NCBI GenBank assembly: GCA_030704615.1
Contig: CM060731.1
Coordinates: forward strand, 69,688,001 to 69,752,000
Length of the DNA stretch: 64,000 nt
Origin: Takakia lepidozioides
Lineage: Eukaryota; Plantae; Bryophyta
Reading direction: 5' to 3'
Part shown: in pieces, positions 6,085-27,900 of the stretch
Layout of the letters: each line of letters starts with the position of its first letter
Numbering within the stretch: position 1 is the first letter of the stretch
The notes under the pieces: model-generated
Databases searched by the model: none
What the model was told of the DNA's origin: nothing
The model's input: only the letters and a program-made list of their open reading frames with translations
Translations under genes and position numbers: made by a program

Positions 6085-6840
6085 AAGTGTGGAGCATTGT
6101 GGATGCACACCAAGTGTTCAACAAATGCCTGAACGCAGTTGGATCATGCGAATATTATGATGGCAGGCTTAACAAGAATGGGTGTGGTAAGAAAGTGGAG
6201 ACATGAACAAATGATAGGTGAAGGTAGAAAGCCGGACTGGGTCGCTTGCGATGCGGGTGCAAGCCTGGCAGCCCTGGAAAAGGGCAAAGAGGTCCATGAT
6301 GACATCAGCAAAGCAGGAATTGTACCAGATATCATTCTGAACTGTATCCTGGTGGACGTGCATGCCATAGGCTGGAGCATCGAGGATGCAAAGGGGTGTT
6401 TGACAATATGGCTGCACGAGATGTGGTGTCCTGGAACACAGGATATGCCCAGCATGGGTGAGGGATGGAGGCAATGGAGACATGAGCAAATGATGCGGGA
6501 AGGGGTGAAGCCCAAGCCCAAGCCCAAGCCCAACTGGGTCACGTTCACTTGCATTTGCAATGCATGCACAAGCCCGGCAGGCCTGGAGAAGGACAAAGAG
6601 GTCTAGGTCGACATCACCTAATGGGGAATTGTACCAGATATCTCTGAATACTAGTGTATTCCAAATGCAGGAGCATCAAGGATGCATAGGGAGTGTTCAA
6701 CAATATGGTTGAACAAGATGTGGTGTCCTGGAACATAATGATCACAGGATACGCCCAGTATGGTTGTCATAGGGAGGCCCTGCAACTATTTGAAGGAATG
6801 CAAAAGGAAGGCTTGAAGCCTGACAGTATCACCTGTACAT
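6085..6840 (+). pseudogene. Degenerate PLS PPR gene
   Basis: Frameshifted motifs ([24 protein letters not shown]; VFNNMVEQDVVSWNIMITGYAQYGCHREALQLF) similar to 3508-5262, with stops and a (CCCAAG)n expansion at ~6508-6532. Confidence 0.85.
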
Positions 6841-7092
6841 ACACTTATGAAGTTCAAATAGTATCTACAATTGCACAATCCTCAGTGGTATAGGAGATAC
6901 TAGATTCCTTTCCTCCGCTTGGAAAAAGAAAAAGGGGGGATCCAAATCCAAACAATGTTGGATGGTCGTCTGAATCAATATACTTACAAACCAGAAAAGT
7001 TCAACTCATCCCATCTTTCTCTACACTCTCGACAAACCAACTCTTTCCTAAAGTTACAATCTTCCACAGCACCTGCTTCATGTCCCTTTGAC

Positions 7093-7959
7093 TCAACTTT
7101 TGGCAGGTGCATCATCCGTCGGCTCAGTGGGCTGCAAGACATGCAAAACAAGGTCAGCATGTGAGATGGGCAAGAAATGATACACCTCCTTTGCTTGTGA
7201 AGCTTTGTGGCCAGAGAAACACCACAGCTCTCTAGACAGCTCAGCCTTGGACACATAAAAACAGGGGGTGGAAGAGGGTGTGGAGAAGAGCGAAGAGCAG
7301 CACAGTGACCACTGCCACTGCTGAACCACAAATTCGATTTCTCTGAAGTGCTTGTGGCCATTCTGTCCATAATGTGGGCTGCAAACATTTTCTGATGCAT
7401 TGTAGTGGCTCTGCTTTGTGTACGCATGTCGCTCACCACGGCAAACAAAGTCTTATGAGTACATCATGGACAGATCCAACAGTTTGAATGCCCACTCCAC
7501 GTGGGTATAGAGATTGGCAGGGCTTGGACTTAACCTAGGCCCAATGTGAATGCACCACACCACAATGTCTAGTTATTGGATTTCATTTGCTTTAGTCCTA
7601 TGATCACAGACCCATGCCCAGGTTTCATAAATTAGCAATGGGGAAGACAGGGGCAAGTGAAATGGAAGGAGAACAATGTGGCCGAGTACCATGGACGAGA
7701 CATACTAACATACAGAAACTGACATGCAGAATACAAGTGAAAACATCCATGCCAGAGGGAAAGACGACAAAGAAGTAAGGGTTTTGATACAGAAGTGTTG
7801 CTGAAGAGAGAGAGGCTTGAGTTTGCAGACCTGTTCATGGGCATAGTGCCATGAAATGCCGCGAGTAATGTTGAATGCCAAATTTGCCCCAAAATAGACA
7901 GTTGCCAGTCCAAGACCTGCTGTCACACTCTTGTAAACAATGTCCAACACCTTGGCCAT
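7093..7959 (-). CDS. Small single-TM protein (55 aa), COX14-like cytochrome c oxidase assembly factor family; exons 7959-7831 and 7131-7093
   Basis: MAKVLDIVYKSVTAGLGLATVYFGANLAFNITRGISWHYAHEQ|PTEPTDDAPAKS* with a phase-0 GT..AG intron 7830-7132. The D-x-x-Y/H-K/R plus TM pattern is recalled from COX14-like proteins. Confidence 0.65.
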
Positions 7960-10403
7960 TCCTGTTCATGCCGAAATGCCACCATTGAAAGAAGTTTGTG
8001 ATTTCCACATCTGCTACATGAAATAAAATCCACACCCAACTGATAAGTACCTTTGAAGAAAACTCCGAGAAACCTTTGCAAAAACCAGTTCCCATGCCAG
8101 ACTAGCAAAAGGAATAGGGCTATCAGATCCCTTAAGCCCTTGTTTAGGGAGTGTGGTCACTGAAAGTCACTGAATCCCTTGCCGACCACTGGGGTTGATT
8201 AAAGCAAACAGCCTTCTTAGGACTGTAGTATAATCAGGGCAAAAGGTACTGCGTAACCTAGAAAGGGTTGGGATGCCTGGCACAAGACTTGCCCGCTGCT
8301 TGTTCGAAACAACGAGACCACATATTGCCAACAGACTACTGTTATGGCCCCCTTGACGACCCGTAACCGGGAGACAGGTGCGGAAGAGCAAGAGAAATTG
8401 CGCCTCTTCACCGGCTAATGTTATATGCCGCTTATCTTCAAAATCGAAATCACTCTATAGCAACGGAAGAAGAGAAGCCACTAACGACCTCTCCTTGATG
8501 TTTCTCCCACTCACTGCCTCTACTCTGACATAAAACCCTGGTTACTGCAAAGCCTGCACATACGTCGTCACATCCAGTTTCTTCTCAATTCGTCTACATC
8601 AAACACAAAGCTGAGTACCTTCATCATGCCAGGTCAAAACAACAGTGCAGCCAACCAAGATTTGGAAGCGCTCTTACATCTACACTAACCGAATTCCATA
8701 CACGCCCTTCCCGAATTCGTTGGCTCCAAAACACCTTCCCAGAATTGAGGTGGGAGATTTAAGGGTAGGGAGCCCTGATTGCAAGAAGAGTAAAGGGGTG
8801 GAGGCAGAGTAGAGTGAGGACCCACCTGATATTGCTCAAAGTTAGGACAGCAACTTCTCTCTGAGGTCAGCTGCCCCGGCTGCTTCAGAGGGCGCAACAG
8901 ATTCCAGGGAGGTCGAGCGGTTCACAGACTTGGATAACCCACTGATGACTTCGGAAACCCTAAAATAGTTCTTTCGGAGTGCTGCCCATATGAACCTTTG
9001 TATTACCAATATATAATGTGTCGTTGTGTTCATATTCGTCTCTGTCTGTCACTTGGACACGAGACTGTTTTGAAATTTAGTTTCTCCATTTCTTCTTCCC
9101 TTCCAAGCAAGATAATGTGGGAGGGTGGGCATGGCAGGAGGGTGCACTTAATTATGCTTCTAGATGGGGCGGCGGAATGGAGCTGTGAAAGGGCTCAGCA
9201 AAGCTTTGTCATCTGCAGTTGATCTTCCAAGCTTGTATAAGAGTTTCAAATGATGATATATATCTCACTGGGGAGTAACATCACCAACGACAAATCACGC
9301 CCAATTGCACTACATACTGCACTTTCATGCATTGCCAATCGATTACAGTTTATGTTTGATTCATGTCTGTATGATGGAATGTGGATGTACTCCAGCTATA
9401 GACCCAACAATCTGTAGTGGGGGAAAGCAATTGTAGCATTGAGCAACAAGTAACAAATGACAGCTGAGGCCTCATGTGAAGAGGCTAATGGTGTAAACTG
9501 AGTAACTGACACAAGGAGGATAGCAGGTAAATAGCCATGTATTGATGCACATTGGTTATGGTACCTCAATTGAGGCACAAACCATGTAGGAAACACAGCT
9601 GACTGTCGAAAAAAAGTCCACCACCGCTGTCAAATTCAGTTCCCTCCTGCGAAGTGATCTGGCTAAAAAAGATGGTGGCGCAACTGCTCTTAACTCAGGC
9701 AACGAATGCAATTTACAGCTGATCTGATGTAGTTACATATGTCCTTAGTGCTGCTCAACCCTGAGCTCTTATATTCATAGTTGAACTCTACTTCTGAGTC
9801 AGTACATCCTCTTTCTCTTTCTTCCTCTCCCCCCCTTTGCCCCCCAGCCACCTTTGCCAAATCAATTCCAAGCTAGAGTGGACTGTACTTTAGTGCTATA
9901 CTCCTAGTGTCAGATCAATGCTATTGTGTACCTTCAAGAATACGTGAATGACTTGTTGTGGGCTGCATACAGTGGGCCATAACTGGACCCGGGCCCGGTT
10001 GGTTGCCGGTCCAATCCGGGGAATCTGCATCCCCATCAACCCATCGCCTGACCCATTCCTGAACGGACTAGAGCCCATTTACCTGGAAATGGGACAGTCC
10101 AGCCACCGCCTACAACCGGTGCACTGATGGGAAGAAGGGCATGGCCCGCAGCCCAGCCCACGTGTAAAGGTGGTGGGGCCCATGACTGGCGTGGAGCAGT
10201 GGGTACATACAAAGTTTTCAAACCCCACCTTTGTGGACCTGGAAATGGACAATTCCGGTTGGGGGCAAATGGGGACGTGCCCCCAATGGTCACAGCCAAC
10301 AAATGAACAGTATATACACAGATAATGTCAGTCGACATTGGGTGAGGGAGAGAAGCTCCAAATCATACTTTACAGATAAGGAACCTGTGCGCCTCATGAC
10401 TAT

Positions 10404-13400
10404 CTATGGTTTCCTCTTCTTTGCTTGCTTGCCATACAGCTCTTTGCCATCCATCTGTGCTTCTTGCTGAGCACGGTTCCATACATCCTTGAGCTTTGAC
10501 TCTGAACCAGTTTGGAGCCACGCCAAGATCTCTGGGTACAAAAATGTGGGATCTCTTGACCAAGCCTGTCCTAGCTTGTTGCGAGTATCAATCTCATTAG
10601 GCCCAAAACTAAGCCTGTGTAATAGCTCCCCAACACGCTTGTGCACATGTGCCTCGGGCTTACAAATTATGCCAGGGTCTGCAGCCGTGTGTAAGAGCAG
10701 AGATGAGAAGGAAGGCACCACCTTACCTTGCAGCAAAGAGAAAGCAAAAATTGCCACCCGCGTCTTGCTGTTCTTCATCGGGAAGGAATGCAATGGGAGC
10801 TCCCAGAGATGAGGGCCAAAGCTGGGAGTCACCCAACACATGACCTGATCACTACAGGAGTCGTACCAAGGGGGGGGATCTGCAAGTGGCTTTGAGAAAA
10901 TGCAGAGAGGGTTGGCATGTGAGACAAGCCAGTGGGCATCGACAGCTGTCACACCCCACATGTAGGGCCTGGTTGTGTGAATGATCTCGTTATGTACCAC
11001 AAATTCGGGGGCCTCTCGGAAGACTGCTGATGATGGATGGAGATACACAGATTCTTCCACAGCACATGCCTGATACCTGCATATTATTTCAATCGTTCAG
11101 GGGATTAGATGCAACTGAAGCATATTAATGTGGCACTCTTTCGTCAATTGACAATTTCAGAAGAATAATGGCATTGTAGCTCAAACCTGATTGCTTTTCG
11201 GTGTTTTCCATCAGTTCCCAGCAATTGTGCTCTTTCTCGCGCACTCAGTCGCCGTGCAACACGATCGGCCCAACCTGCACAAATGGCCTGCTGAAGTGCG
11301 GTCTCTTGCTGCAGGCTCAAGGTCTGGCTTGCCGGATTTTGCCATGCTTTCTCAGCTTCCATCAGAAAATCTTGACTCAAGCACAGCTCACCCTGCCCTT
11401 CAATCTGTCCAATGAAGTGGGCTCCAGCTTCACAGCTATACTGAATCACCAGTTGTGCCAACTGTTGCCGCAGCTTCATCATCTCTTGCATTGTCTTCGC
11501 ATGCAAATACTGAAGCTCACAAAACTCATCGCGATTGTCAGACTTTTCATAAGCCCACAAGGCCTTCACCACAGTCAATGCATCACTTTTTGAATTACGA
11601 AATTTACCATGGGCCACACCTGCTGCTGCACGTCTCTGCTTCCTCCTCAACATCTCAGCCTCCGTCCAATCTGCATCCTCTTCTTTTGATGCACTTCCAG
11701 CATCTGCAGACCAGTTTTCAGCATGTTTTGCCACACGCTGGATTTCTTCTTTTGCGTTTGTGCTGGCTGCTCTACGGCCTAATAGTTCACCACCACTCCC
11801 TTTACCCCCATCCATGGCATTTTCTGGATTGCCATTGGACGGTAAGTCATCCCCCCTGGAAACGCCTACATCTCTGAGAAGAGGATTCTCATGACTGAGA
11901 GCAGCAGCTGCTGCTATAGCAAAGGCCAGAACTACACTTCCCCCATTCCTATCTCCCTTCCCCTCCATTTTCTGCGCTGCATGAAGAGCGGCTAGCAGCA
12001 TCCGTGCATGACGTGGGCTGATAGGATAAATAGCCATAGCTCGGCCGATAGGAGTTAATAATCCTGTGTCAGGGTCCAAAGCTGAAAGAGCACGTAGGCA
12101 ACGCTCACCCTCTACCAGCGCTTCTCGCTCAGGTGGAGATGGAAATGGAAAGTTCATCACCTGAATCAAGCCACCCAGACAAAGGGGTTCTGGATTCTTA
12201 AGAAATACTCTAAAGCCTATAAAATTCCAGCAAACTCTGACAGACAACATGGCTGCATAGAGAAGAAATAACAATGCCAATCAAAACATGCCACACTACA
12301 GAGAGGATGGTGTATGGAGGCTTTGGTGTTGAGTGAAGATTCAATCAGGTGCCACGACTGAGTGAGTGGGACATTCAGTGTGTGTGAGACAGGACAAGTG
12401 AGCAACCTTGTTGATGCCCATACGTTTCATGAAGAGAATGACGCCCTCAATGGGGGCCTTGCTCATCTCTTGAGGTGCAAACTGTGGAAACGTGTTATTA
12501 AACATTGCAGAAGAGTATAGTCGATAGCAGTGCCCAGGTCCTGTGCGGCCAGCCCTGCCAGCTCGTTGATTGGCTGAAGCCTTGCTGATCCACCGAACCA
12601 CATACTTGGAGATTCCACTGGCACGATCAAAATCTCTCTCCTTCGCCCGCCCACTGTCTACCACATATCTGCAAGACAAAAAGCAGAAACATATGTAAGT
12701 TCCTCACATTCATTACTAAATGACGGTGGTTGCGCAGTATCATAGCAACAACAAAGAATAAAATCATGTGGGGCACCTTAAGCTCCATGCAATAGAGCAC
12801 TGAATGTGTATCATTACCTGATACAGACAGGAATTTCCATTCTCCTCTGTTCACCTTTTTCCTTCCAGATTGGATGCAATGAAAATACATCTGAATCTTT
12901 ATAATGTGATAAATTGAGAATAAAGCATTACCTTATCCCTGGGATTGTGATGGAAGTCTCTGCCACATTGGTTGCAATTACCACCAGGCGAGCACCTTCT
13001 GGAGCCCCTGAAAAAACTCGTAGCTGTGCTGCTGCTGGAAGCATTGCATATAAAGGCAGCACATGCAATGGCCCAGGAGTTGAAGAACCATTGGTCTTCT
13101 TATCAGGGTTCCTTTTGGTGTTTGACTCACCACTCATATTACTCATATTATTGCCTGGGAGGCAGTTGATCAGAGTGTGATCAGGGTTAGTTTGTGATGC
13201 TTCAAGGTTTGGCAGACAGCTGCCATCTGCAGATGCCACTGGTCCATTTAGCTGACATACTTGTGTACGTAGCATCTCGGCATGCTTCTTCAGTGAGACT
13301 TTAAGAATCTCATCTGCACCAATAGCAGCTGTGGTAGTGTCTTGATGAATATCTCCAGAAGTTCTGGAGTCCTGTGACGCATATGCTTCATCTGTTTCAC

Positions 13401-16400
13401 TTAGATAGTCATCATCTACTTCTATAGAGCTGTCCTTGCCATCATCATCTGAGACCCACCAATCTAGTTCCCTCTCTTCCTCACCATCAGCATCAGCTTC
13501 ACCAAAACCAAGGCCTGCATTGCGCTCTTCTGCAAACCATGAACAGATATTTGGAGTTTAAGAGGTGATGTTGAGTTACTAACTTTTCAATTAGTGAAGT
13601 CTGCTACACATGTACAAGGGACTTGATTTAGTGCTGGATTGACATGCAAGAATTAACATCACTACAACAAGACGCATCATAATGAAAGCTGACGATCCAT
13701 GACAACTTACTGAGGGACTTGATTTAGTGCTGGATTGACATGCAAGAATTAACATCACTACAACAAGAGGCATCATAAGGAAAGCTGACGATCCATGACA
13801 ACTTACTGAGGAGATACTAATCATTTTCTTCTGAGTATGGGATGTAAAGCTTAGGGATTCACAATTTGGAAGAAACTTCGTTTAAGCCTACCTGCACTCT
13901 TCTCCAAATTTCCATCCATGGCCTTGGTAATCGCCTCCAGATCGAGTTCTTGAACATTTGTCTCCTGATTCAAATCATTTGTTCCTGCCTTCACATCCAG
14001 GGTAATTTTGTAGTCAGACACAACTACTTGTGAGCTGTAATGCTTGACTGAGAGAAAGAGGGAGGCATGTCTGCATGGATGTAACTACAGAGAAGTCTTG
14101 AGCATAGCAGCAACTGAACCTCACAATCGTCATGCAGAGATGCTGGAAAATTCATAATCTTTTGTTTCGTACCTTTGGTTGCCCAATTTTGTTGCAAGGT
14201 ATGAAACTCTTTCGGAGTTTTCGACATAAAGTCTCCACCTCCTTCTGCCCTGTCAAAAAGACCAAAATGCCACCTGGTGGAAGCTTCCGGTGAATCACAC
14301 AAACTTTCTTGTATGCTTGGTCTACATAATCAAGAATCTCAGTCCGGGCACTGAAGTGTATAGTGACTGGAAACTGCCGTGCTGGGACCTGGACCACTGG
14401 TGGTGGGTTGGGAAACATCCGGCGATTGGAGACGAAGTCTTCTACCCGCAGGGTTGCACTCATGATCACTAGCTTCAAAGGAGTTATTGAAGCTGTCAAA
14501 GGAATGCTGGAAATTCCCAGTGGCTTCTGTTGCTGGACTTTGCAATACTCTTCATACATGCTCTGGATAATAAGAACAAAGACACATGATGCAATAGTTG
14601 TATTCATTTGCTAAATTGAGAACGGACAAATTAGCAGGTTAAGGTGTACAAGAACACACTCAATACCCATCAGAAAATCATTGGTCTCTTGTTTTGAACA
14701 ACATGAATACATGAATACATCACAACCTACTCTATTAGATGACTCTTGCAAATGAACAACAATGTGGGGAAACGAATGTAGGGACAAGGACGAACAATCC
14801 CAACATTGCTCTGTTGGGACTGATAGAGAAATGCCCCTTTTGCTCTTGCACATATCTTACCAGGACCCTGGCCATAGCCAACACCTTGTGGTATGTCCTT
14901 TTAGGTAGTCCCCATATGCATATAGCATCCATATCTGGTGCACTCTTCTCCTTCCGGGTCTATTTGTCTTTTTCCTCTGCCTCTGTTGGTCTTAACATAC
15001 CGTGACAAAGATGGACATTTTATTTGTACAGACAGGACTGACACTGTTTATCTCTTTTAAGGCCTGTAGAAGAGTACCTTGCGAAGGGGAAGGATGCGTG
15101 AAAGCATGCCGATCAAAATGTCCGTGTTGAGGCTCCGTTCATGGGCCTCATCCAGAACGATCATCGAGTATTTCCGGAGTAAGAAGTCTGCCTGCATCAC
15201 CTCAGGCAACAATATACAAGTTGTGGCTAGTTTAAGCACTTGATCTTCCAGCCTTTTGGCAAGGGGTTTGGAAGATGGTAGGAAAAAGTGGATACGTAGG
15301 ACGCCTTAGTGTCAATCAACTGATGTCATGCCAATGTGGCCATCTGGGTATTTGTCTCTTTGTTTCTCATGCTAAGCAGTCGGCATGCGTATGAAACTCA
15401 CAAAATCTTCTTTGTTTGAGCAGTACCTGGACTTCTCGAAGAAGGATGCCATCAGTCATAAACTTGATGCAACTGTCATCACCTATCTTTCGATCATGAC
15501 GCACCTGAAATCCGACTTCCTGGCCCAACCCAACATTCATCTCATAGGCTACTCGCTTGGCAGTTGCAAGCACAGCTACACGCCGTGGTTGAGTGACTCC
15601 TATAATTCCTGACCGCTCCTTACACAGGCTTGACCCATATCCAGCCTCGAAGAGAAACTGCACAACCCCCAGCACGTTTAGTCAGGATGTCAAAACCGGT
15701 CACACTGTTGGCCTTAGAACTGGCATAATCAGCGAATAGACAAGATGGCACACAAAATTCTAAACAACTAAAGATATGTGATTTGACCAGACCCAAACTG
15801 CAACTACAAAAGCAGACACTGCATAGGATAGCTGGGCAGAAAAAATGATATTTCTACTAGATGTACCTGAGGGACCTGAGTTGTTTTACCGCACCCTGTT
15901 TCTCCACACACAATAGCAACATCATGCTCTGTGATGGCTTCCATGATTTCCTGCTCCATCATTACAATTGGCAACTTTTCACGACCTCTCTGAATATCTT
16001 CGCGGCGATTGATGGGGACCACCACCTTGTGCAACCCCATTTCTCCCTTACCATGCACAATGTTTCCTTCCCTGTTTGGGGACCTAACTTCCAAATTGTT
16101 CTCTATCACAGAATCAGTAAGACCAGCTAGACGAGTCTCTTCAGAAACAGGGTTCTTCCTCCTTTTCTTCTTTTTCTTCTTGTATTGTCCTTCCATAACC
16201 TTGTCATTGTTCTCAACACCTAGTCCAGTCTCTTTAGGGACAAGTTTCTTCCTCTTTCCCTTTTTCACCTTTGCCTCCTGTTTTTCTAATACCACTTCCT
16301 CTTCCACATCGTCACAAAAACCTCGACCTGGACTTGTCTTCACTTCGGAAATGTCTTTGGAGTCAATAACGATACCAACCCTCCTTAGCCCTATTTCTCC

Positions 16401-18387
16401 TCTCATCCCACCCTTGGACTCTCTCGAGGCCCCCTTTCCAGGAACATTCATGTCCATAGCCAAGACCCCCTCTCTCCTCCTTGCACACAATTCAAGGACC
16501 CGACTTCCCCCATGGCTGCTCTGTACTTCTGAGCTTGGAGATAGTATGTCCGAAGGGAAACCTAGGGATGGACTTTTCATAGTTCCTTTCTGACTTGGCT
16601 TTTGCCCCATTATGTTGGTAGCTCTTGCTTTGATAGACTTGGTTGCCTGCTTAGAAGGTAAACCACCTCCCTTGATTTCCTTGTCGACTTGCACAGAAGT
16701 TTTTGCATAAACTGGGACTTCCTCGATAGGATCAGAGCTGGGCCTTTCACGAAGAAGAGGAGTATTTGCAGGCACTGGCAGGCCCGCCCGCTTGTAATTC
16801 ATTGCTCGCTGAAGTTTCTCTCGCATTGTCTCTTCCTGTATCCAATGACACCAACTGTAAGTTCTCTGCACTAACTGAGCCACAAATCTTTGTTCCCATC
16901 TAAGCTTCACAGAGTGTAAGATTCTCCATATTCAATCCTTCGTTGTCATAATGACCATGGGGAGAAAAGATAAGAGATGGGGAGAAGAGGGAGAAGAATC
17001 AATTCCAACACAAGAAATGAGGGGAGAAAATTTCCTTCAGTGATTTGCCAAATTGACTCGTTTCTGTACACGTACGTCTCTCTGCCTAAATCTGCAGTAA
17101 GTTACTACCAAACAGTCAATGGAGATGGCCTGACCTTTCCAAGGGTACCTGACGAATGCAGCAGCGCAAAATCATCATCTGCCAGCTTATGCTTTCTGTT
17201 ACCTCAATGAATCAAGGAGTTTACTTTTGCATCCACCTTGGTATTCTCTCTTATTTAAAAGATACTTGATGACTAGTCAACTGCCAAAAAAGAGAAGAAA
17301 GTGGCAAGCACAGTAGTGTTCAAAGGCATTCGGGATGGAGGTGACAATGTAGGTCCAAATGTTCCCATACAAGGTCACAGAAATATTCAATGTCCAATGA
17401 CTTCTTGGAAACAGAAAACCTCATTGGGCACTCTAATACATCACATGTACAAGCTTCAAAATGCATCAATGCGGCGAAACTCTCCAATTTTTACACTGCA
17501 TACAGACCTTAAAGCTGTCAACAATGCACGTTATGATATTGCCGAAACCCCAGTGAAGAGCTTAAGGTTCATAAAACATGATAGAGGATACTCCAAGGTC
17601 TCCATGACATGAGCTCGCATGTCTCTCTTCTCCTTTTCCTTCTGTCAAAATTGATTCACAGCGCTAGAAACTGTCAAGCATCATTGCACAAGACCCAGAA
17701 AATCATTGAATAATTCCTATTCAGACTTCGGATATTGACATGACTACTGAACGATGTGTCCCAGACTAAAGGGACCCAAGAAACTATGAATATACCTGCA
17801 ACCTTTGAAGCTTCCGCTGCAGACCCTTGCTTTTCTTCAAGTGCAGTTGCTGCTCTTGCTCCTGGCTCTTCACATCGGAAGCAGAGCAACAGCTATAAGA
17901 TCATCAATGTGAAGCTAAGACAAATCCCTTTACATGCAAATTTATAACATTGTCACCTTCCGCACAAAACAAGAAACAGGTACAATCAAGCAGAGAACTT
18001 ACTTTTGAGATCTTTCTGTCATGCTTCTTACGTCCAGGAAGGATAAGTGCATTGCTTCCATTCTCCCCTTTGAGGCTGTTCAAACCAGTGACAGAGAACC
18101 AGTTAGACCTCCCAATTGCCTCTCTTCACCGTCCCCATGTCTTTTTCAGTAATCCTCCGATGCATTGCTCTCCTCAACCCATGCTCTCCCTCGTATAATT
18201 TTTTGTTCCTGCTCCATTTTCCCACCCTATCTAGCTCCACTCCCATATACACTAAACCCTAAAAATTCCCATCTCTTCTCTTCCATGAAAACTCCGAAAA
18301 GCAAACCAAGGGAGAGGAAACATACTCCATTACATCCGGCACAGGGTCATAGGTTGAGGCCATTCCACCCGGGTTAAGGAGGCCCAT
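10404..18387 (-). CDS. DHX37: DEAH-box RNA helicase DHX37/DHR1 (plant FAS4/DEAH13-like), multi-exon
   Basis: Motifs [40 protein letters not shown] and QRAGRAGR, plus HA2 and OB-fold (YLHPSS). N-terminal [11 protein letters not shown]. Approximate exons with GT-AG: 18387-18326, ~18075-18003, ~17866-17795, ~17642-17593, ~17195-17135, ~16837-15866, ~15657-15427, ~15190-15078, ~14561-14172, ~14040-13892, 13529-12932, 12668-12407, 12160-11187, 11076-10404. Confidence 0.92.
13618..13811. repeat. Intronic tandem repeat, ~96 bp x2
   Basis: ggacttgatttagtgctggattgacatgcaag...gatccatgacaacttactgag is duplicated nearly perfectly. Confidence 0.9.
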
Positions 18388-18699
18388 AGAAGATAGATGA
18401 AGTGGCGGAGGAATTGTCGCCTCCACCTGCACAGGTAGATCGCTATATTCAGAACCCCTCGCCACCTAGACTCGACTCGAATCAAATGCCAATATTTCTG
18501 AAATAGGAAGTACTCTCTGCAACGACACCACAAGGAACTCCAAATGCTACTCAGACGACTGTATATTCCTCTGAAGACAACCCTTTGTGTCTACATCACA
18601 ACAAGAAAACCGAAATACAGCTTACTTTCAAAATCGAATCCTTCCGAGACAGTCCATCTGTATCTGTCGCTCGTCAATTGTGTGCGTGCTTGAATCGAA

Positions 18700-18900
18700 C
18701 ATTGAAATGTACAAGCGAAGCAATTAGGGTTTGGAAATTCCGATTGTTCGTCCGTATGTGAACGACCGTTCTGCATTTGGACGATGTAAGGTGTTCGTCA
18801 ACGGAACCCTTCTTAGTTGGATGAGACATGCGACCGTGGTGGAGATCCTACGGTCAATAAAGCCCATGGCCGGGGTTTAGGGCTTACGAGTCCCCACACA
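18700..18900. promoter_or_regulatory. Probable bidirectional promoter with telo-box and site II motifs
   Basis: TAGGGTTT (telo-box) at 18725-18732, AGCCCA (site II, TGGGCY reverse) at 18861-18866 and GGGTTTAGGG at ~18873. Another AAACCCTA lies at 18254. The region sits between divergent DHX37 and DDX52-like genes, and these motifs are typical of plant ribosome-biogenesis promoters. Confidence 0.5.
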
Positions 18901-19036
18901 AAGGAAAGCCTCTCCTCTTTACGTATAAAGCAAATGCGCGGCAGCTTTAATCACTCATGGCGTGTCTTGCCGGAGGTTTAGTTGCAACCAAGGTGGTCGG
19001 TGTGGATATGGAGATGTCTGTTTGGCTGTGATCGGT

Positions 19037-21218
19037 TTGGATCCGGCTTTTCTCTTCACGGGTGTGCGATTTGACAGAAAGCGATTTGCAGCAGATGTTT
19101 ACCGGTTTCAGGTGTCTTCATCTTGCCTTTGACTTCCGTTTCCTCACTGGGCAGATTCGTGTAGGAGAAGTCGGAGGTTTCAATATCGTGTTGAGTTTCA
19201 CATAACATTGTTGCACTTCTCTTTTGTGCAAAGAGTAGTGGTGAGTTGCCCAGATGTAACACCGTTCACATTTCCTACTCGCTGCAGAGAAAGGAGGAAC
19301 ATATTATACAAGTCCGCTGCAATGAAGGAGTGCACTCTTCGTCTGAAACCTGCGAAAGTTCAATGCAATTACTCTGACCGGCTCGGAGGTTAATGGTGTC
19401 AACCACAGGAAGGCGAACTAAAGGCACTTCCAAGGACGAGAATGGTAACTTATCCGTTGTTTGTTGGTCCATCTGCGGCTATAGGCTTGTTCTCTTCAAG
19501 ATTTGGATTCGCTTAGCAGTAATTATTGGTCGCGTACGATCGTCTAATTCTCCTCAGTCCCGCTGGCATCTTCTACAGCTGTAGGCGCCATCTGTATATA
19601 TGTTAATGGTTCGCTTCTGCTGGAGCCCAAGGTTAGGGGTGACACGCGTTAGTTTGTCTGTATTTCGTTCAGCAATAACCGTCTCTGCTTACAACCCTTT
19701 ACTCAATCTGACGAATACCTTGCGCCGTCATTATTTGGGCACCTACATCAACATTTGCGTCACTGTATACTGGATTGTGGGTAAAGGGTTGAGTACTGCC
19801 CTGTGGATTGGTCCATTGAGTTTCCGGTCAGCATTTTATGGGAGTTATTAATCGTGCATTGATTTATCAGGTGCTGAAAATGCATTCAACCTTTTCAAGG
19901 CTCCTGGAGTTCGAGAGAGGATGTGGAGTCACATGTAGTAGACACCTCCTGCGAATCAGAAGTAAGACTGCCATCGGAACTATGGTTACCAGACTGTTAA
20001 GGACTGTTAACATTTTTCATGTAATGCCTGGTTGCTAGGCAGTACTGCGTCGTATTGTGTACCTATCATGAGTGGTAGATAGGCCAATAATTGTGTAGGG
20101 AGATACAAAATGGCATGTTTGGTATTGGTAATTGGTATAAGTAAATTATCATCAGTGATATCCTTGTCTCAACTCCCTGATGCTCTCTGGAAGGACCATA
20201 AAATCGACCTCAGCTGGTCTAACACTACAAACCTGATCAGCCTGTGTGACTTTTTCATCATTTTTGTGATCTTTCATTGCAAGGATGAGACAGAGAACTA
20301 TGTCTGGACATCTAAGGGGAGTATCCCTTTGCAGAAATTCTCATGAGTCTGAGCAATGCTTGTTAACTTACGTTCTCTTTGGTGGCACTGGAAAGCTGCC
20401 TGAAATCTAGGAAATAGTGGCCTGTACTGCCACCAAAGGTATCTTCACCTGCTTCCTTGTCTTGACGGGATTATTAGCTGATGGGCTTTGCTGATTTAAT
20501 TTGCAACAAAAGAGTTCCATTATTTTGGTTGCAGAGTGGAGGATTTGGTCATGGATGAATCAGGTGTAAGCTGTTTGAGATGGGATTTGTGGAGCAGATT
20601 GATGCAGTTGTAACAGCCCGCATCCACTCAACCATGACCCGGGCCCTCTTAAGTGCCACATTGCCAGAGTCTGGTGAAGAACCGGCACAGACCACAATGC
20701 ATGATTCTGTCCGTACCTTCATTACGGGAAGGTAAGAGCCACTAAGTGAATGTGGCTTGCTAAAAAGTAGATGAGTCCAAAGATATGTACTTCTGCTTAG
20801 GATTTGAAGTGTTTTTCTCACTTCAGCTCTGCAGTTATGTCTGACTAGGACGACACTATCTCTGGTTGAGTTTTTGGTTGTGGTCTACTGCTGTTGGCAA
20901 ATTCTGCATCTCTTACCAGCACTAAAGCAAGTCATTGACCTACTCCTTCAGGTGTAGGGCATCTTCATTATGCTCTCGTGTTAAATAAGGATGCTATATA
21001 GACTGGGTAGATCTTACCAACCTGTGGCTAGACCAGTGGCCTGGTGTAAATTGGTCTTCTCCACATGTTTCACAGCCTTCAATGACTCTGTATAGGTATC
21101 AAGGTATGTAATTTGTAATTTTTGGGTGCAGGAATTCAGCATTACTGACAGGTAGACGATGATGTTTGTTGGCAACGAGGAAGGGAAACTTCTTGCACTG
21201 CGCCAGATCTTCAACCAG
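19037..21218 (+). pseudogene. DDX52: DEAD-box helicase DDX52/ROK1/RH57 pseudogene (partial, spliced structure retained)
   Basis: Exon 19037-19111 reads (L)DPAFLFTGVRFDRKRFAADVYRFQ, matching the ROK1/RH57 N-terminus, with TTG where ATG is expected. ~20180-20216 reads KIDLS. 20535-20731 reads VEDLVMDES-frameshift-KLFEMGFVEQIDAVV..ALLSATLPES..TMHD. 21132-21218 reads frameshift-MFVGNEEGKLLALRQIFNQ. Motif I and the C-terminal exons were not found. Confidence 0.82.
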
Positions 21219-21305
21219 GTTCGTCCTTGTTATTTGAGGAGCATGGGGTCATTCATCTGTGCTTATGTATGTTGGCCCTGGTTGGGTGATTAGTGACGAG
21301 CATGG

Positions 21306-21385
21306 CTTGATGATGATCAAATGCAAACGGGCGGACTGAATTGATGCCGTGTGGATTGTCTGTGCTCAATGTCACTACCTGGGTG
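21306..21385 (+). ncRNA. U43/snR70-like C/D box snoRNA (partly degenerate)
   Basis: C box ATGATGA at 21310-21316. ACGGGCGG-a-CTGA (D' 21336-21339) is complementary to the universal SSU rRNA CCGCCCGU, and the +5 rule hits the C equivalent to yeast Cm1639. A second element TGTCACTACCT matches 18S AGGUAGUGACA. The D box reads CTGG. rRNA sequences are from memory. Confidence 0.6.
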
Positions 21386-21561
21386 TTGTATGACACTGAA
21401 AGTCTTGCCCTCACATCATGACCATGGTTTCCTCCCTGTTGAGATTTGTCAGATCAGGGTTCATTTCCTTGCAGACTGAATGTGTACATGGGAGTCCTTT
21501 GCAGGTCTATGTGCTAAGCTTTTGTATCCAGATGTTAGTTACAATTGCAAGAAGGGTTCTG

Positions 21562-21640
21562 GCAAATGATGACCAACATCTTATTCTACACGCTGAAATC
21601 ACTGTGTGGATAAAGTAATTTACCTCTGACAATCTGATGC
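21562..21640 (+). ncRNA. C/D box snoRNA copy 1, dual guide (25S and 18S)
   Basis: Terminal stem GCA/TGC. C box ATGATGA at 21566-21572. Guide CTTATTCTACAC (21580-21591) precedes D' CTGA (21593-21596) and is complementary to LSU GUGUAGAAUAAG. Guide ACCTCTGACAAT (21622-21633) precedes D CTGA (21634-21637) and is complementary to SSU AUUGUCAGAGGU. Confidence 0.8.
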
Positions 21641-21743
21641 TCAACCCCTCTCATTTGCATGGTATTGAACATAGTATGTTCATGACAAGAACATAGCAGG
21701 TTTCTAGCTTACATTCACAAGCTATTGAATAGAATGTTGTCTA

Positions 21744-21826
21744 GCAGGTGATGATTGACATCTTATTCTACACTCTGAATTGCTTGTGTGTGTGTATGCA
21801 GAATTTTACCTCTTATAATCTGATGC
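21744..21826 (+). ncRNA. C/D box snoRNA copy 2 (paralog)
   Basis: GCA/TGC stem, C box GTGATGA at 21748-21754, identical guide CTTATTCTACAC at 21762-21773, D' CTGA at 21775-21778 and D CTGA at 21820-21823. The second guide has diverged (ACCTCTTATAAT). Confidence 0.75.
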
Positions 21827-24800
21827 ACAAAGCTTGCTGGGCATTCACCATACAAATTGTACTTCATGTCCCAATATCAAGCTCAAATTGCTACTGAAGC
21901 AAAATGTGTTGGACTCCAGGCCTGTGCATTCCACCATTCTGCACAAGAAAACAACCACCCACACAGAGATTCCAGTCTCAGCGCCATGAAAATGGAAAGT
22001 ATCAAAACAGAGGTATACAGGAGTCAATGAAGAGGGATGTCAGGTAGCTGCTACCAGTGGAGGAAATACGGTTGCAGACAACATCCAGTAATCTGAAGGA
22101 ACTCGATGATAGTATGTTTGATCAAGAAAAAACACAACTTTCAAGGCAACTCCATGTTTGTCCTTTCAAGGCTTGGACAGCACACAATTTAAGTAGGTAG
22201 GCATGAACTTACTGGGGAAGGAGAGGTTATTGAAGAGCCAGGCGTTTCCTCCTGCGTAGCTGTGTATGTACCCATCCTGTTCCAATGCATCCGTCACAAA
22301 TCAATTATAAATCCATTCTATCATGTTAAGACTGTTCTTCAATCAAGCTACTATGTCTATCGGATGATCCATCTCAACAAACTGCATAGTTCATAGTCAG
22401 AACGCTACAGTAAGTGAAGTTTAATGAGGACATCATCTCTTCCAGTCTGACACAATTTGTGAAATGAAATTAGTGCAACCATCGCCACGTCTCAAATGTA
22501 TTGCAAGGTAGAGGAATCAAAGCAACCTCTCGCTTTCTTCTGGGATGTCAATGCCAGCCCATGTATACATGGTAAATCCCCTTTGAGCAGATTGTTTCTA
22601 GCAGCAGGGAAGGCTATAGAAATCTCAGGCTGATTAGCATCCAACCCAGTGGGCAGAAATCCCACCAACCTCTCCAAGACCTGCTGGTATTCTATGAAAT
22701 ATGGGCTCCTATGTACCTTAAGGTCAAAGTCTTCACAACAACTAACCCTCCTAGAGACAGTCTGTAGTTCGCCAAGGGGGTATTGAACCCCGCCTGACGT
22801 TGCAAGATTGCAAAGTCTGGGGTTAGAAGATAGATCCAGTGTTGATTACAAGGCTGTCTTCACAAACTAGACGGTATAGTTCTGCTAAAATAGCAACTCA
22901 CAGATCACCAGAAAGGAGAGAAGTTACTTGTAGACAGTGCCAGCTGTGTTCCGAATATCCCAACATAAAATGTTAGGGTCCTTCTCAACCAACCCACCCA
23001 TCATGGTAGATGCAAAGCAGTCAGCACAAATATCATCAGAAATTAGTATCTGATGAGCTGTAAGGGGTTAAAATGCCATGGCATCTGTGTCTCTATGGTG
23101 GTGTAGAACACTATATTGCTTGAACGCACGCAAGTAATGCGCGACTACCAAGTCTGGTGTTGTCCCTGACAAAACAGCTTATGCTCTATGCTCCGCTAAT
23201 CCCTGTCCCTTGAGAGAGATCTTTATTAATGCATGTAGAAGGTGGAGCCTGAGTGCCACTGCCCGGTAGAGGTTTTTTCGTTTTTTCTTACTCTTCTCTT
23301 CTCCCCTTTGTTATTACTGTGAGTTCCAAGGCTTCCTCCCCTGCTTTCAAAAGAACTTGCGATGAGCTTAGGTATTACCTACTCTGGGCTCTGAGTTTAC
23401 ATGAAGCGAAATTTCTTTGCAGTTGGGTAGGCGCTACTGAATCTCTGTTATGTTATTTGCCTTATTCCAATGAGTACTGCTCAGCGATGGTCGGTTGAAG
23501 CTTCAACCAAATCCTATAACGGTTCCATCCACAGGGCCCGTGAACAACCAAAAACGAAAAACTAAAAGCAATAAAGCAAGAGGAAAGTCCCTCCTACCTG
23601 CTCCCTGCTGCGGCGAGGACGGCTTGTTGCTGCGGTGACTTCTTCGCTCCCGCCCCGCGCTCCCTGCCATGCACCCACCCACCCCGTCAACACTCAAAAC
23701 AAACAATGTTTTTACAAAAAAGAAAAAAACAAGAAAGCAACAAGAAGAGAATGAGAGGGATTGAGAGAGGAGGCAGAAGGGGAGAGACAACAGAGCTGAA
23801 GACAGGGCATACCTACCTTGGCGCAAGCACAACAACAACTGCCCAAATTTTAAGTGATCGGGATTTAACACCTTGGGGGGAGGAGCTGTTAAATGTCATA
23901 GTCCTTCGTCGGCTGCTACGAGCCTGCTAACTAGGGGGGGGGGGGGTTCCCTAACGTGCAGGTGCGGCAATCACCATGCAGTTAACGGCTGCTAGATCCC
24001 AAGCATACTACTCCAAGATTGTCAATTTTGGAAAGATCAGAGACGCAGAGTGACATGTGTGGCGGGGAAATAGAGTGCTGTGTTGTCAAATCGGTTAACT
24101 CACAGTCCACAGAGTGTACTCATAAACGTCGTTAGCCTTGTGTAACATGATTACTGCCGAAACTGAAGAAATTCCAAAAGGCCCGCGAGACCTCTTCTTC
24201 AAGAAAATTAATCAATCCGACGGAGCCCTGACGAATGGCATGGGCACCTAAATATACAACAAGAGCTTGAGGCAACAGCTGGGCACCATGCGAGACAAAG
24301 GTGGCGTAGAAAGGGCTTGAACTCAGCTCAGCGAGACCGGTATGTATGTCGCTGCGAGATGGTCCTCCTGCGCTGCAAGGAAGACAATCTTTCAAGGGAC
24401 TTTCAAAAATTTGGGAGGACGAGGTGGATCTTTGTGTGAAGGTCCAAGGAGAAACAGGGATCCAACATGGCTGGGGCGGGGCGGTTGGCAGCCCGGATTT
24501 CTAGCTTTGAGAGTGCCAGTACGAAGGGTGCTCTATCGATTCGTCATGCATGGGTTGTTCCACAAACTTTGCTTTGGAGTTGCATTTTCGGGAGTGTGAA
24601 AGACGAGAGACAAGGCTGTAGTGCTACAGACTGATTTCTCAATAATTTGAACGACCGTTATACAATAGACCTACCTAGCATGCGTGAATTCTGCGTCGTC
24701 TTGAACCTCTCGAACTCGGTGAAAAGAGATGCACTGGTCAACATCGTTTTTTGTGATTTCTTGAAAAGATATCTCGAGAATTGTTGCTCTCACAATTTGC

Positions 24801-24923: not shown

Positions 24924-27900
24924 ATGGCATTGGCGGGGTTTAATGATCAGGCTGGGCAGACGACACAAAAGACACCGGCGGCGACAGTGGCGTCATCGTT
25001 GCTGTACAGATTTACGGCTACCTGCAGGAGCAGGTTGTTCAGGTTTGTTCACATACTCGCACAACTTGCAGGTTAAAACAATTCTTCTTAGACTACTAGA
25101 ACATGGATCGGGTTCATCTCCTTATATTGATTTGAAACAACGAGCTGGTACTGTTGGAATATGATGGCGCGTGCGCGGGGAGTGGTGAACAGTTTAGTGA
25201 ATGCCAGGGCAATTTTTCGTCAGATGTTCCCGAGAGATCATAAACCTGGAGCCAGCTTATACCAAATTTGGGCAGGGAGGCGCCTATTCTGGCTGGGAAT
25301 TCATATACACGACAGAAGCAGAAATGAAATGAAATGAAATGGTGCTTTATAACGTCCGCGGAAAGCTCATAGAGCTTATGGGACAGTGGAAGAAAACATG
25401 AGAGAGGAAACAAAAGCAAAGCCAAGAATAAGAGCTAATGCTCGAGTGGTTGTCTAAGGGTGAAGGCCTCGTTCAGGTAAGCTGCCAAGCACTTCTGATC
25501 CTCATAGTGGAACAGAGCAGCAACAGACTTCCTAATGGGTTCCTTGAAGTTCAACAGAGCATGTCCCTTTGGCTGAGAGATAAATCCATCGTGGGTCTTG
25601 AGACCTGAAGTAGTCCCACCAAACTTTCTCCAGAGCCTGCGGACCTTATGAGTTATTCATTGAAAATTCAGCACGTACAGTTTTGAAATTGTTGAACGTT
25701 CTCTGCTCTCGATTGACATTAATTATGTACACGCTAGACTATGAAATGTTATACCGAGGTTGACTGTTGAGAAAGAGAGGGAGAGGGCATGAGTAACGAT
25801 TACAATCATGTGTTTAGTACATGTGCTGCGCAGTGCACAAGGAGGAAGTGAGAATATCGTTGGCATTGATTTGGGCACCACTAACTCGTGTGTGGCTGTC
25901 ATGGAGGGCAAGGTCATCTCACCCCACCCTTTACCGTTCGTATTGATCATGCTAATGTAAAAGATGTTAGAATTGAGCAAGAACATAAACAAGAACTAAA
26001 GTCTTAGACTAAAGCTAAAACTAAAGCTCTCCTCCCAACCATAGAAGCCACCATCATACTCTTACACTTAGACTAGTGACTTCACCCCGAGCTTGTGCAA
26101 GAAGGTCTTTAGAAAGTCTTACTTGGTCACTTCAACTTCCACTATAGTGACCATCCACCTTCTAGCCATTCACCTTCCAAAGGTGAGTTAAACAAGATAA
26201 TCTCTTAGACTTCTAAGCCTTTGGCCTTCAAGACTCTTAGTCTTCTAGATATGTTTAATTACTTCCAACAAAAGATGATGAACTTCCAATTTCTTCAACT
26301 GGGTTCCAACTTCGGGGGCAATCTTTCAAGCCTTACCTACATGTGGCGCAATTTGTTTTTGGCCAGCTTGATGGAATCTTCATAATACCTGATTCAAGTT
26401 TGTGGTTGACAGACTCCGCATGTAATAGAAAATGAGGAGGGGAGTCGAACGACGCCCTCTGTGGTGGCCTTCACGCCCAAAGGTGAGGTCCTTGTTGGCT
26501 GGCCAGCAAAGCGTCAGGCTATCACCAACCCAGAAAACACTGTTTTTGGCGTAAAACGGTTGATTGGCAGGAAGTTTAACGACCCACTGGTACAAAAGGA
26601 GATAAAAATGGTGCCTTTCAAGATTGTACCAGGTCCCAATGGGGATGCCTGGGTTGAGGATGGCGGCCGAAAACTATCACCAAGCCAGGTTTCTGGGTTC
26701 GTACTCTCAAAACTGAAAGACTCGGCTGAAAGATATTTGGGTCAGCCAGTTTCCAAAGCAGTAATCACAGTGCCTGCATATTTCAACGATGCCCAGCGAC
26801 AGGCTACGAAGGATGCCGGTCGCATAGGTGGGCTTGATGTGCAGCGAATTATCAATGAGCCAACAGCTGCTGCTCTCGCCTACGGGTTGGACAGAAAGGA
26901 GGGCCGCATAGCAGTTTTTGACTTGGGGGGTGGGACATTTGATATTTCAATCCTGGAGATCGCAGGGGGCGTCGTTGAGGTAAATGATCTGTTTCTAAGC
27001 TGATTCGATACTGAAAATCAACCTCAGAACTTATGAGATAGCTGGACAATCGAGAGTTGCGGGATCACTTTCATGAGGAAAGTGACGAAAGGTTCCAGCC
27101 AGTACTTTGCAATGTTGTTCTCTTTACTTCTATTCCGCAATTGGCTCAAGGGATATAAGAAGCACACTTCCTTCCCTGTCTCCTCCCACTCTCCATGCCC
27201 TTAGTCTCCACCCCTTGTGTTGAGTGATTTGGTGGCAGGTAAAGGCAACAAATGGGGACACATTTTTGGGAGGAGAGGACTTCGACAATGTACTCGTGCA
27301 GTACCTAGTAGAGGAGTTCAAAAAAGAGACTGGCATTGACCTCTCCAAGGACAGGCTAGCCCTGCAACGGTTGAAGGACGCAGTGGAAAAGGCGAAAGTA
27401 GAACTGTCATCTACTATGCAGACTGAAATCAATCTGCCCTTCATTACTGCTGATGCTTCAGGGCCCAAGCACCTGCTCATGACAATAACACGAGCCAAGT
27501 CAGTTTCCTTCTCAGGCTCATCTTTATCAACAAAGCTGGTTTTGAGGGAGGGCCACCACTGATGCACAAAGAGGTTCAGCGTCGACTGTTTAGAAGCAGC
27601 AATTCCCCTGTGCAGGATTTCCACTTTCCAATGTTGTATGCGCAATTTAGTGGAGTTTGAAGTACATGGTGAGTAATTGCCTTTAGCACAGATTTCAACT
27701 GCTCACAGAATGACTATTATTGCTGAAGGTTTGAGCAGCTGGTGGAACCCCTTATCGAGCGCACCAAACAGCCTTGCTATGACTGTCTGAAGGATGCCGG
27801 CATAAAACCAGAGGATATAACTGAGGTGCTGTTGGTGGGGGGCATGACGCGCGTGCCCAAGGTGCAAGAGACTGTGAAGAGTATCTTCAAGAAGGAGCCT

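Follow-up and report, generated by a model that had tools for sequence, protein, structure and literature searches.

Can a helicase gene that no longer encodes a protein go on serving as a host for small nucleolar RNAs (snoRNAs)? The question is raised by a stretch of 64,000 nucleotides from the moss Takakia lepidozioides (GenBank assembly GCA_030704615.1, contig CM060731.1, positions 69,688,001 to 69,752,000 of the forward strand), the whole of which we call the window and in which positions are counted from its first letter. An initial annotation, made from the letters alone, had described a decayed copy of the DDX52/RH57 helicase gene that survives as the non-coding host of a cluster of box C/D snoRNAs. 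Our analysis indicates that the locus is a transcribed, spliced and truncated paralog of DDX52, that its introns 7 and 9 carry C/D snoRNA genes inherited from the parent gene, and that it probably works as a non-coding host. We base this on the decay of the exons, the splicing of the RNA, its inability to encode a protein, the kinship of the snoRNAs with those of an intact ortholog and their placement in the introns, and the complementarity of their guides to ribosomal RNA (rRNA), which are taken in that order below.

Sequence related to DDX52/ROK1/RH57 lies on the plus strand from ~19.0 to 21.2 kb, and with full-length moss and seed-plant DDX52 proteins as tblastn queries it was recovered in fragments only, the moss proteins being the closest to the remnant. 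The remnants, together with the remaining parts of the transcript described further below, are as follows.

19037..19111, plus strand: exon 1 remnant, DDX52 amino acids 1-25, 80% identity to Sphagnum DDX52 (tblastn), donor GT at 19112, joint 19111/19288
19288..19444, plus strand: transcript exon 2, stops in all three frames
19871..19961, plus strand: exon 3, remnant of DDX52 amino acids ~58-88 (..NAFNLFK.. at 19876-19911), two stops in the ancestral frame
20157..20214, plus strand: 3'-terminal remnant of ancestral exon 7, 8 nt deleted, lying in an intron and left out of the transcript (joint 19961/20598)
20535..20597, plus strand: 5' portion of ancestral exon 8 (RVEDLVMDES..KLFEMGFVEQ), intronic in the present transcript, motif II broken by a 2-nt insertion
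20598..20731, plus strand: transcript exon 4, starting at a cryptic acceptor within ancestral exon 8, with a motif III remnant (LSATLP) and many radical replacements
21132..21218, plus strand: exon 5 (..MMFVGNEEGKLLALRQIFNQ), TAG at 21153-21155 for Gln, stops in all three frames
21219..21801, plus strand: last intron (ancestral intron 9), snoRNA-bearing, donor 21219, joint 21218/21802
21802..22295, plus strand: terminal exon 6, no DDX52 similarity, no open reading frame (ORF) above 47 amino acids

The coding lesions that had been reported from the sequence were all found again. In place of the start codon there is a TTG at 19037-19039 (moss orthologs begin MDPSFLF.. where the window reads LDPAFLF..), and there is no in-frame ATG upstream of 19037. 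Two frameshifts could be located precisely. In the exon 7 remnant the tblastn fragments DILVSTP (20157-20177) and DALWKDHKIDLS (20179-20214) lie in two frames, one base apart, and the single nucleotide between them (20178) stands where 9 nt encoding LRL are expected, so that 8 nt have been deleted. In exon 8 the fragment RVEDLVMDES (20533-20562) is followed by KLFEMGFVEQIDAVV..ITGR (20568-20732) in yet another frame, GGTGT at 20563-20567 having replaced one codon in DES-D/KLFE, a +2 frameshift. Further on, a TAG at 21153-21155 occupies the place of the conserved Gln that precedes LVFVG, just upstream of the fragment MMFVGNEEGKLLALRQIFNQ (21159-21218), and the motif II/III segment shows radical replacements at conserved positions, for example LFSATLP to LLSATLP and VEELAR to GEEPAQ. 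The claim that exons are missing also holds. Measured against the Sphagnum gene, the locus lacks the part with the Q motif and motifs I, Ia and Ib (exons 4-6 and the greater part of exon 7), as well as everything beyond exon 9, that is, the entire helicase-C domain; there was no match to motif I, Ia or any helicase-C exon within the 64-kb window, and comparison of the window with itself revealed no second DDX52 copy there. The locus thus resembles DDX52/ROK1/RH57 genes in its N-terminus, its motif II/III and ..FVG.EEGKL.A.RQ.. remnants and its ancestral intron positions, but unlike a functional member of the family it has no start codon, carries frameshifts and a stop, and lacks motifs Q, I, Ia, Ib and IV-VI. 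The DEAD-box core is not complete in one open frame, only a broken motif II and motif III being left. It is a pseudogene, a truncated and degenerate paralog that stands head-to-head with a gene for a DHX37-type helicase.

Evidence for RNA comes from contigs of two public runs belonging to two studies. The contigs contain exon-exon joints for DHX37 as well as for the pseudogene locus and therefore derive from cDNA. One contig of 1022 nt fits the window with 0-2 mismatches, and DHX37 is correctly spliced in the same runs. The initial annotation had stated that GT/AG sites remain at the locus, and these sites are not only present but used, with joints at 19111/19288, 19444/19871, 19961/20598, 20731/21132 and 21218/21802, all GT..AG; the last of these was seen in both runs. 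The product is a six-exon RNA which spans the whole interval of 19.0-21.9 kb and ends near 22295. Three of its junctions are ancestral, while the third intron and the last acceptor are not. The third intron joins the donor of old exon 3 to the cryptic acceptor at 20597/20598 in old exon 8, thereby skipping the exon 7 remnant and the broken motif II, and the last acceptor sits in new sequence. Unspliced RNA of the locus is represented too, by a 363-nt contig that covers 21246-21608 with 1 mismatch. To judge coding capacity, exons were translated and searched singly, and frame continuity was derived from exon lengths. With frames tracked in this way, no ATG-initiated ORF above ~47 codons was found across the transcript, and since no frame is free of stops in exon 2 or in exon 5, the ~1-kb RNA that the pseudogene produces by splicing at GT-AG sites is non-coding.

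What does this RNA carry in its introns? For the analysis of the snoRNAs we made use of an intact DDX52 gene with introns (6700-13700) on a 42-kb Joint Genome Institute (JGI) metagenome contig, L118, which comes from a plant resembling a non-seed plant. Guide targets were sought in 115 eukaryotic ribosomal DNA (rDNA) contigs that had been fetched by pattern; none of them is from a plant, the pattern probably excluding land-plant 25S, and two rDNA contigs from human-gut metagenomes (L028 and L059) were left out. The identity of the target segments as rRNA was confirmed by Rfam on two rDNA contigs. We predict four box C/D snoRNAs at the locus, three in or at the end of the last intron and a fourth, missed by the initial annotation, in the current third intron.

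20263..20372, plus strand: fourth box C/D snoRNA, within current intron 19962-20597, homolog of L118 8849-8945
21300..21411, plus strand: U43-like box C/D snoRNA, C 21308-16, D' 21336-39, D 21396-99, C' box and D guide degenerate
21558..21644, plus strand: snoR16-like copy 1, C 21567-72, D' 21593-96, D 21634-37, 42.9 bits, E 5e-5, two strong guides
21740..21829, plus strand: snoR16-like copy 2, C 21749-54, D' 21775-78, D 21820-23, 38.8 bits, E 5e-4, D' guide intact

It had been claimed that three C/D structures with rRNA-complementary guides follow the donor at 21219, two of them with intact boxes and terminal stems. Canonical boxes occur in all three structures (UGAUGA for C, CUGA for both D' and D), but the terminal stems are weak, and the remaining structure, the U43-like RNA, matches rRNA over only 8 bp at best. 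By the usual features of predicted box C/D RNAs, the candidates show C and D boxes and a guide of at least ~10 nt next to D or D' that puts its target at position 5, except that the U43-like guide measures 8 bp. Two of them can be tied to a known family. In a permissive Rfam scan of 5 kb, the snoR16 model (RF00296) scored 42.9 bits on copy 1 and 38.8 bits on copy 2, values that are significant and lie under the cut-off of 45.

The two snoR16-like copies are 75% identical to each other, and both pair over 12-13 bp with the large-subunit (LSU) rRNA segment GGUGUAGAAUAAG. Copy 1 has in addition a second guide of 15 bp (one G-U) to the small-subunit (SSU) segment AUUGUCAGAGGUGAA, whereas the D (3') guide of copy 2 gave no convincing rRNA match. 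In Arabidopsis the 3' guide of snoR16 is directed to 25S U48 (..AAUAAGCGGAG..); the moss RNA differs, since copy 1 and the L118 copy match an SSU site, AUUGUCAGAGGU, instead. The D' guide of the moss RNAs is close to the Rfam consensus of snoR16, the moss version (..CUUAUUCUACAC) and the angiosperm consensus (..UUAUCCUACAC) being one position apart. This difference would covary with an A/G difference in the LSU target, which would also explain why land-plant rDNA is absent from contigs fetched with an A-containing pattern. Copy 2 is split by the acceptor in use (AG 21800-21801, joint 21801/21802), so that the spliced RNA cannot yield it and unspliced RNA is its only possible source.

Through its D' guide the U43-like RNA can form 8 bp with SSU CCGCCCGU, which places the C that follows G at position 5 from D'. 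In Arabidopsis this site, 18S C1645, is assigned to U43 (PMC8053127), and the U43-type register (the 18S C of ..ACCGCCCGUC.., Arabidopsis C1645, at position 5 from D') is kept, the match being 9 bp long in L118 and one pair shorter in the window. For the conserved block in the middle of the U43-like RNA (..GAUGCCGUGU.GAUUGUCUG) no convincing rRNA target was found. The fourth snoRNA has a perfect 6-bp stem (20275-80 with 20353-58), a D box CUGA at 20349-52 and a 13-nt guide (20297-20309) which is perfectly antisense to SSU GUCCAGACAUAGU. Judged by its offset from the U43 site in contig L029, the target would fall close to C1219 of Arabidopsis 18S rRNA, a position known to be methylated (PMC8053127). 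L118 likewise has the C of the D box (20349) and that of the guide (20304); in another expressed copy both are changed C>T. Taken together, the nucleotides predicted to be targeted are the following.

SSU: the C that ends GUC in GUCCAGACAUAGU
SSU: the C that ends CCGC, followed by CCGUC
SSU: the U that ends AUUGU, followed by CAGAGG
LSU: the U that ends GGUGU in GGUGUAGAAUAAG

Were these snoRNAs acquired by the pseudogene, or did they come with it? The intact DDX52 gene of L118 contains at least four C/D snoRNAs, distributed over two introns.

L118 8246-8330: snoZ152-like, Rfam 40.6 bits
L118 8849-8945: snoZ157-like, Rfam 24 bits, in the intron between ..KIDLSR and RVEHLV..
L118 11543-11642: U43-like, strong terminal stem, in the intron after ..RQMFQQ (11229-12406)
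L118 11942-12027: snoR16-like, 27.7 bits, strong terminal stem, in intron 11229-12406

Intron 11229-12406 is the counterpart of the last intron in the window. The U43-like RNA of L118 is 86% identical to window 21306-21362 over 57 nt (blastn, E 3e-12) and the rest of the intron cannot be aligned; the snoR16-like RNA of L118 has a 3' guide to the same SSU site as copy 1; and L118 8849-8945 keeps the guide block and the D box of window 20263-20372. Because homologous snoRNAs occupy the same two introns of an intact gene, those in the window were inherited and not acquired, which answers a comparison that the initial annotation had left to be made. The snoRNAs are in fact the only islands of these introns that are conserved with L118, and this conservation mostly reflects the time before the duplication and so cannot decide whether they have been maintained since.

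The arrangement is patchy across lineages, since five DDX52 genes lack it: none of these snoRNAs was found in DDX52 of Sphagnum balticum, Physcomitrium patens, Ceratodon purpureus, Selaginella or Closterium, whose introns at the corresponding positions are short or missing. The Closterium gene has no intron at the snoRNA-hosting position. Its gene model (P0002, 945 aa; L119:3001-9281) contains several repeated exon-like segments, either a tandem exon duplication or an annotation artefact.

The same runs provide evidence for further DDX52 copies in the moss. A 115-nt contig of high depth reads ..LKDHKINLSRVEDLVMDES.. over a proper exon junction and is without exactly 2 nt at 20564; it thus reveals an intact, expressed DDX52 paralog in the same organism. 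The residues KDHKI and RVEDLV are common to this paralog and the window copy, from which we take the duplication to be lineage-specific. In profile and word searches the mRNA of the intact paralog (..LKDHKINLSRVED..) was not matched by the DDX52 proteins retrieved from Sphagnum, Physcomitrium, Ceratodon and many seed plants, and a protein search with a 51-aa exon translation returned distant representatives only. Other transcript contigs are ~85-92% identical to window 20261-20560, 21328-21465 and 21546-21695; their source may be either the functional paralog or a second pseudogene. One contig (X1 record 2) matches window 19932-20260 at 99.4% and then drops to ~85-90% with eight deletions over 20261-20560, which suggests a third DDX52-derived copy, gene conversion or a chimeric contig.

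The neighbourhood of the pseudogene bears on how it might be transcribed. The DHX37-type helicase gene lies on the minus strand, with long open exons at 11.1-16.9 kb and a first coding exon near 17904-18083. Pieces of DHX37 contigs, with CT..AC joints, extend to 18624-18688, and contigs of the pseudogene start at or before 19054, leaving the following gap.

18689..19036, no strand assigned: gap (intergenic or promoter) between the 5' exon of DHX37 (minus strand, RNA to at least 18688) and pseudogene exon 1

In this divergent arrangement the 5' end of the pseudogene is less than ~370 bp from the 5' exon of DHX37. With both transcription starts inside ~370 bp, a bidirectional promoter shared by the two fits, and we infer that the pseudogene uses the DHX37 promoter. 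The 5' region of DHX37 (window 17500-18700, minus strand) contains several short introns, with joints 17641/17796, 17867/18003, 18075/18326 and 18424/18624, some of them within the 5' untranslated region (UTR). Downstream of the pseudogene, window 22755-22935 matches contigs of both runs at ~92% with unrelated sequence on either side and probably represents either a repeat that is transcribed or part of a gene from another location, and an HSP70/DnaK-type exon at 25800-25960 opens the next plus-strand gene.

How the locus could work as a host may be outlined as follows. The parent DDX52 gene was already a snoRNA host in this lineage, and the duplication brought the snoRNA genes along in ancestral introns 7 and 9. 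Transcription through the introns should then release snoRNAs by the route usual in plants, where nucleases cut back the excised intron or the precursor until only a core protected by the snoRNA-protein complex (snoRNP) is left. The likeliest functional products would be snoR16-like copy 1 and the 18S-directed snoRNA at 20263-20372, while the U43-like copy is probably impaired.

Several observations count against a working host and were weighed in reaching this assessment. The two runs are only presumed to be RNA, although their exon-exon joints speak for cDNA. At the gathering thresholds of Rfam nothing passes in the whole window; the U43-like RNA has no Rfam match in either the window or L118, nor is there one at 20263-20372, where moreover the C box is a variant (GGAUGA, 20283-88). 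Compared with its L118 homolog, the U43-like copy has a guide of 8 instead of 9 bp, has lost a second guide of 11-12 bp as well as the C' box, and has gained an insertion. The terminal stems of the last-intron RNAs are weak: that of the U43-like RNA covers ~9 positions with one mismatch and is not used in the minimum-energy fold, copy 1 has 4 bp and copy 2 at most 3 bp, compared with 10-13 bp in the L118 homologs, and the fold z-scores are -0.25, -0.56 and +0.12, whereas the L118 homologs reach -3.1 and -3.6. The diverged intron contigs imply that the snoRNA-bearing introns exist in one or more additional transcribed copies, with ~90% identity to the window in the case of the second copy of the snoRNA-bearing intron. 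Finally, divergence from the other copy amounts to 8-12% in the snoRNA stretches and is thus not lower than in the decayed exons and introns (5-10%).

The explanation that competes most closely with a working host is that the locus is a neutral relic, transcribed only because the active DHX37 promoter is nearby and carrying redundant, decaying snoRNAs that make no selected contribution. We regard this as a serious possibility, although somewhat short of an even chance. It would account for the non-ancestral splicing, with its cryptic acceptor at 20597/20598, its skipped exon remnant and its final acceptor inside snoR16-like copy 2, for the loss of a guide and the C' box from the U43-like copy and for the weak stems, and it agrees with the divergence between copies and the expression of an intact paralog. 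It is less easily reconciled with copy 1, which keeps two long guides and all boxes, with the snoRNA at 20263-20372, which keeps a D box and a guide lost in another copy, or with the recovery of transcript contigs from two independent studies.

The reading of the initial annotation went further, in that selection would maintain the locus as a non-coding host because at least one snoRNA came solely or mainly from it after coding capacity was lost. The descriptive part of that reading is borne out, as there is a spliced RNA without a long ORF and there are C/D snoRNA genes in its introns. Maintenance is another matter, and we consider it unlikely, though well above negligible. In its favour are the intact positions 20349 (D box) and 20304 (guide) where another expressed copy has C>T, the two strong guides of copy 1 and the persistence of splicing at five GT-AG introns; differences from the paralog mRNA fall mostly at third codon positions, a hint of coding constraint after the duplication that comes from a very small sample (25 nt). 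The degenerate contig copy may however be that of the functional paralog or of yet another pseudogene, one snoRNA is broken by a splice site in use, and the comparison of exon and guide decay that would reveal maintenance shows no excess conservation between copies. An intact expressed paralog and similar rates of divergence were indeed what the initial annotation had named as speaking against it, in part: it had in mind a paralog holding the same snoRNAs, and the transcribed intron copy may belong to another pseudogene instead. We would place selection on the locus for its snoRNAs among the less probable outcomes, in the same low range or slightly below. A division of labour, in which one copy kept the helicase and the other was kept for at least one guide (20263-20372, copy 1 or both) that had decayed in the first, seems rather improbable.

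The further proposal, that a protein-coding host had been caught in mid-conversion, stands as far as the copy is decayed and non-coding. It is doubtful otherwise, because DHX37 was found next to DDX52 at none of the five loci from other species (L118, L119, L121, L122 and L124). The absence of any DDX52 ortholog locus adjoining DHX37 among those examined also tells against maintenance, and the window copy may have arisen by a partial duplication to a new place without ever encoding a full protein. That a functional DDX52 gene was misassembled or misread in sequencing is always a general possibility, but it is contradicted by transcript contigs that repeat the genomic lesions, by the absence of ~150 codons (motifs Q to Ib) and the C-terminal domain, and by an intact form that is a separate, diverged transcript; we consider it extremely improbable and reject it.

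A truncated DDX52 paralog that probably works as a non-coding host would not be without parallel. Non-coding snoRNA hosts are familiar in animals, among them UHG/SNHG1 and GAS5, and human RPL32P3 is a transcribed host pseudogene in which a duplicated host lost its coding capacity and kept an intronic snoRNA, SNORA7B. The pattern in the window appears to have precedents in both classes, non-coding hosts and transcribed host pseudogenes: as in UHG/SNHG1, GAS5 and RPL32P3, a spliced RNA without a meaningful ORF has its products in introns. It differs from them in that the moss locus has an intronic cluster, in the plant style, instead of one snoRNA per intron, that an intact paralog co-exists, and that there is no sign of a 5' terminal oligopyrimidine (5'TOP) promoter, of nonsense-mediated decay (NMD) or of selective maintenance. 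In the literature on pseudogene-derived snoRNA hosts nothing specific turned up.

Within plants, U43 and snoR16 are neighbours in clusters of Arabidopsis and other angiosperms ('cluster 66' in PMC5122169; 'snoR160/snoR16-2/AtU43-2' in PMC2875012), and in the moss likewise a U43-type guide (18S C1645) adjoins a snoR16-type RNA. The Arabidopsis U43-snoR16 clusters are independent polycistronic genes, in contrast to the copies of the moss and L118, which sit in a DDX52 intron. snoR16 has been dated to the angiosperm ancestor (PMC5122169); both the family and its linkage to U43 probably predate the origin of angiosperms.

For annotation, the locus is best described as a transcribed pseudogene or long non-coding RNA (lncRNA) together with four snoRNA genes. 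For the family, the comparison with L118 means that in two plant lineages with otherwise almost unalignable introns the same pair of DDX52 introns houses C/D snoRNAs of U43-like, snoR16-like and other types. If the moss copy is maintained, it would provide a datable plant case of a non-coding snoRNA host arising from a protein-coding one, an origin that is usually inferred only after its traces have vanished.

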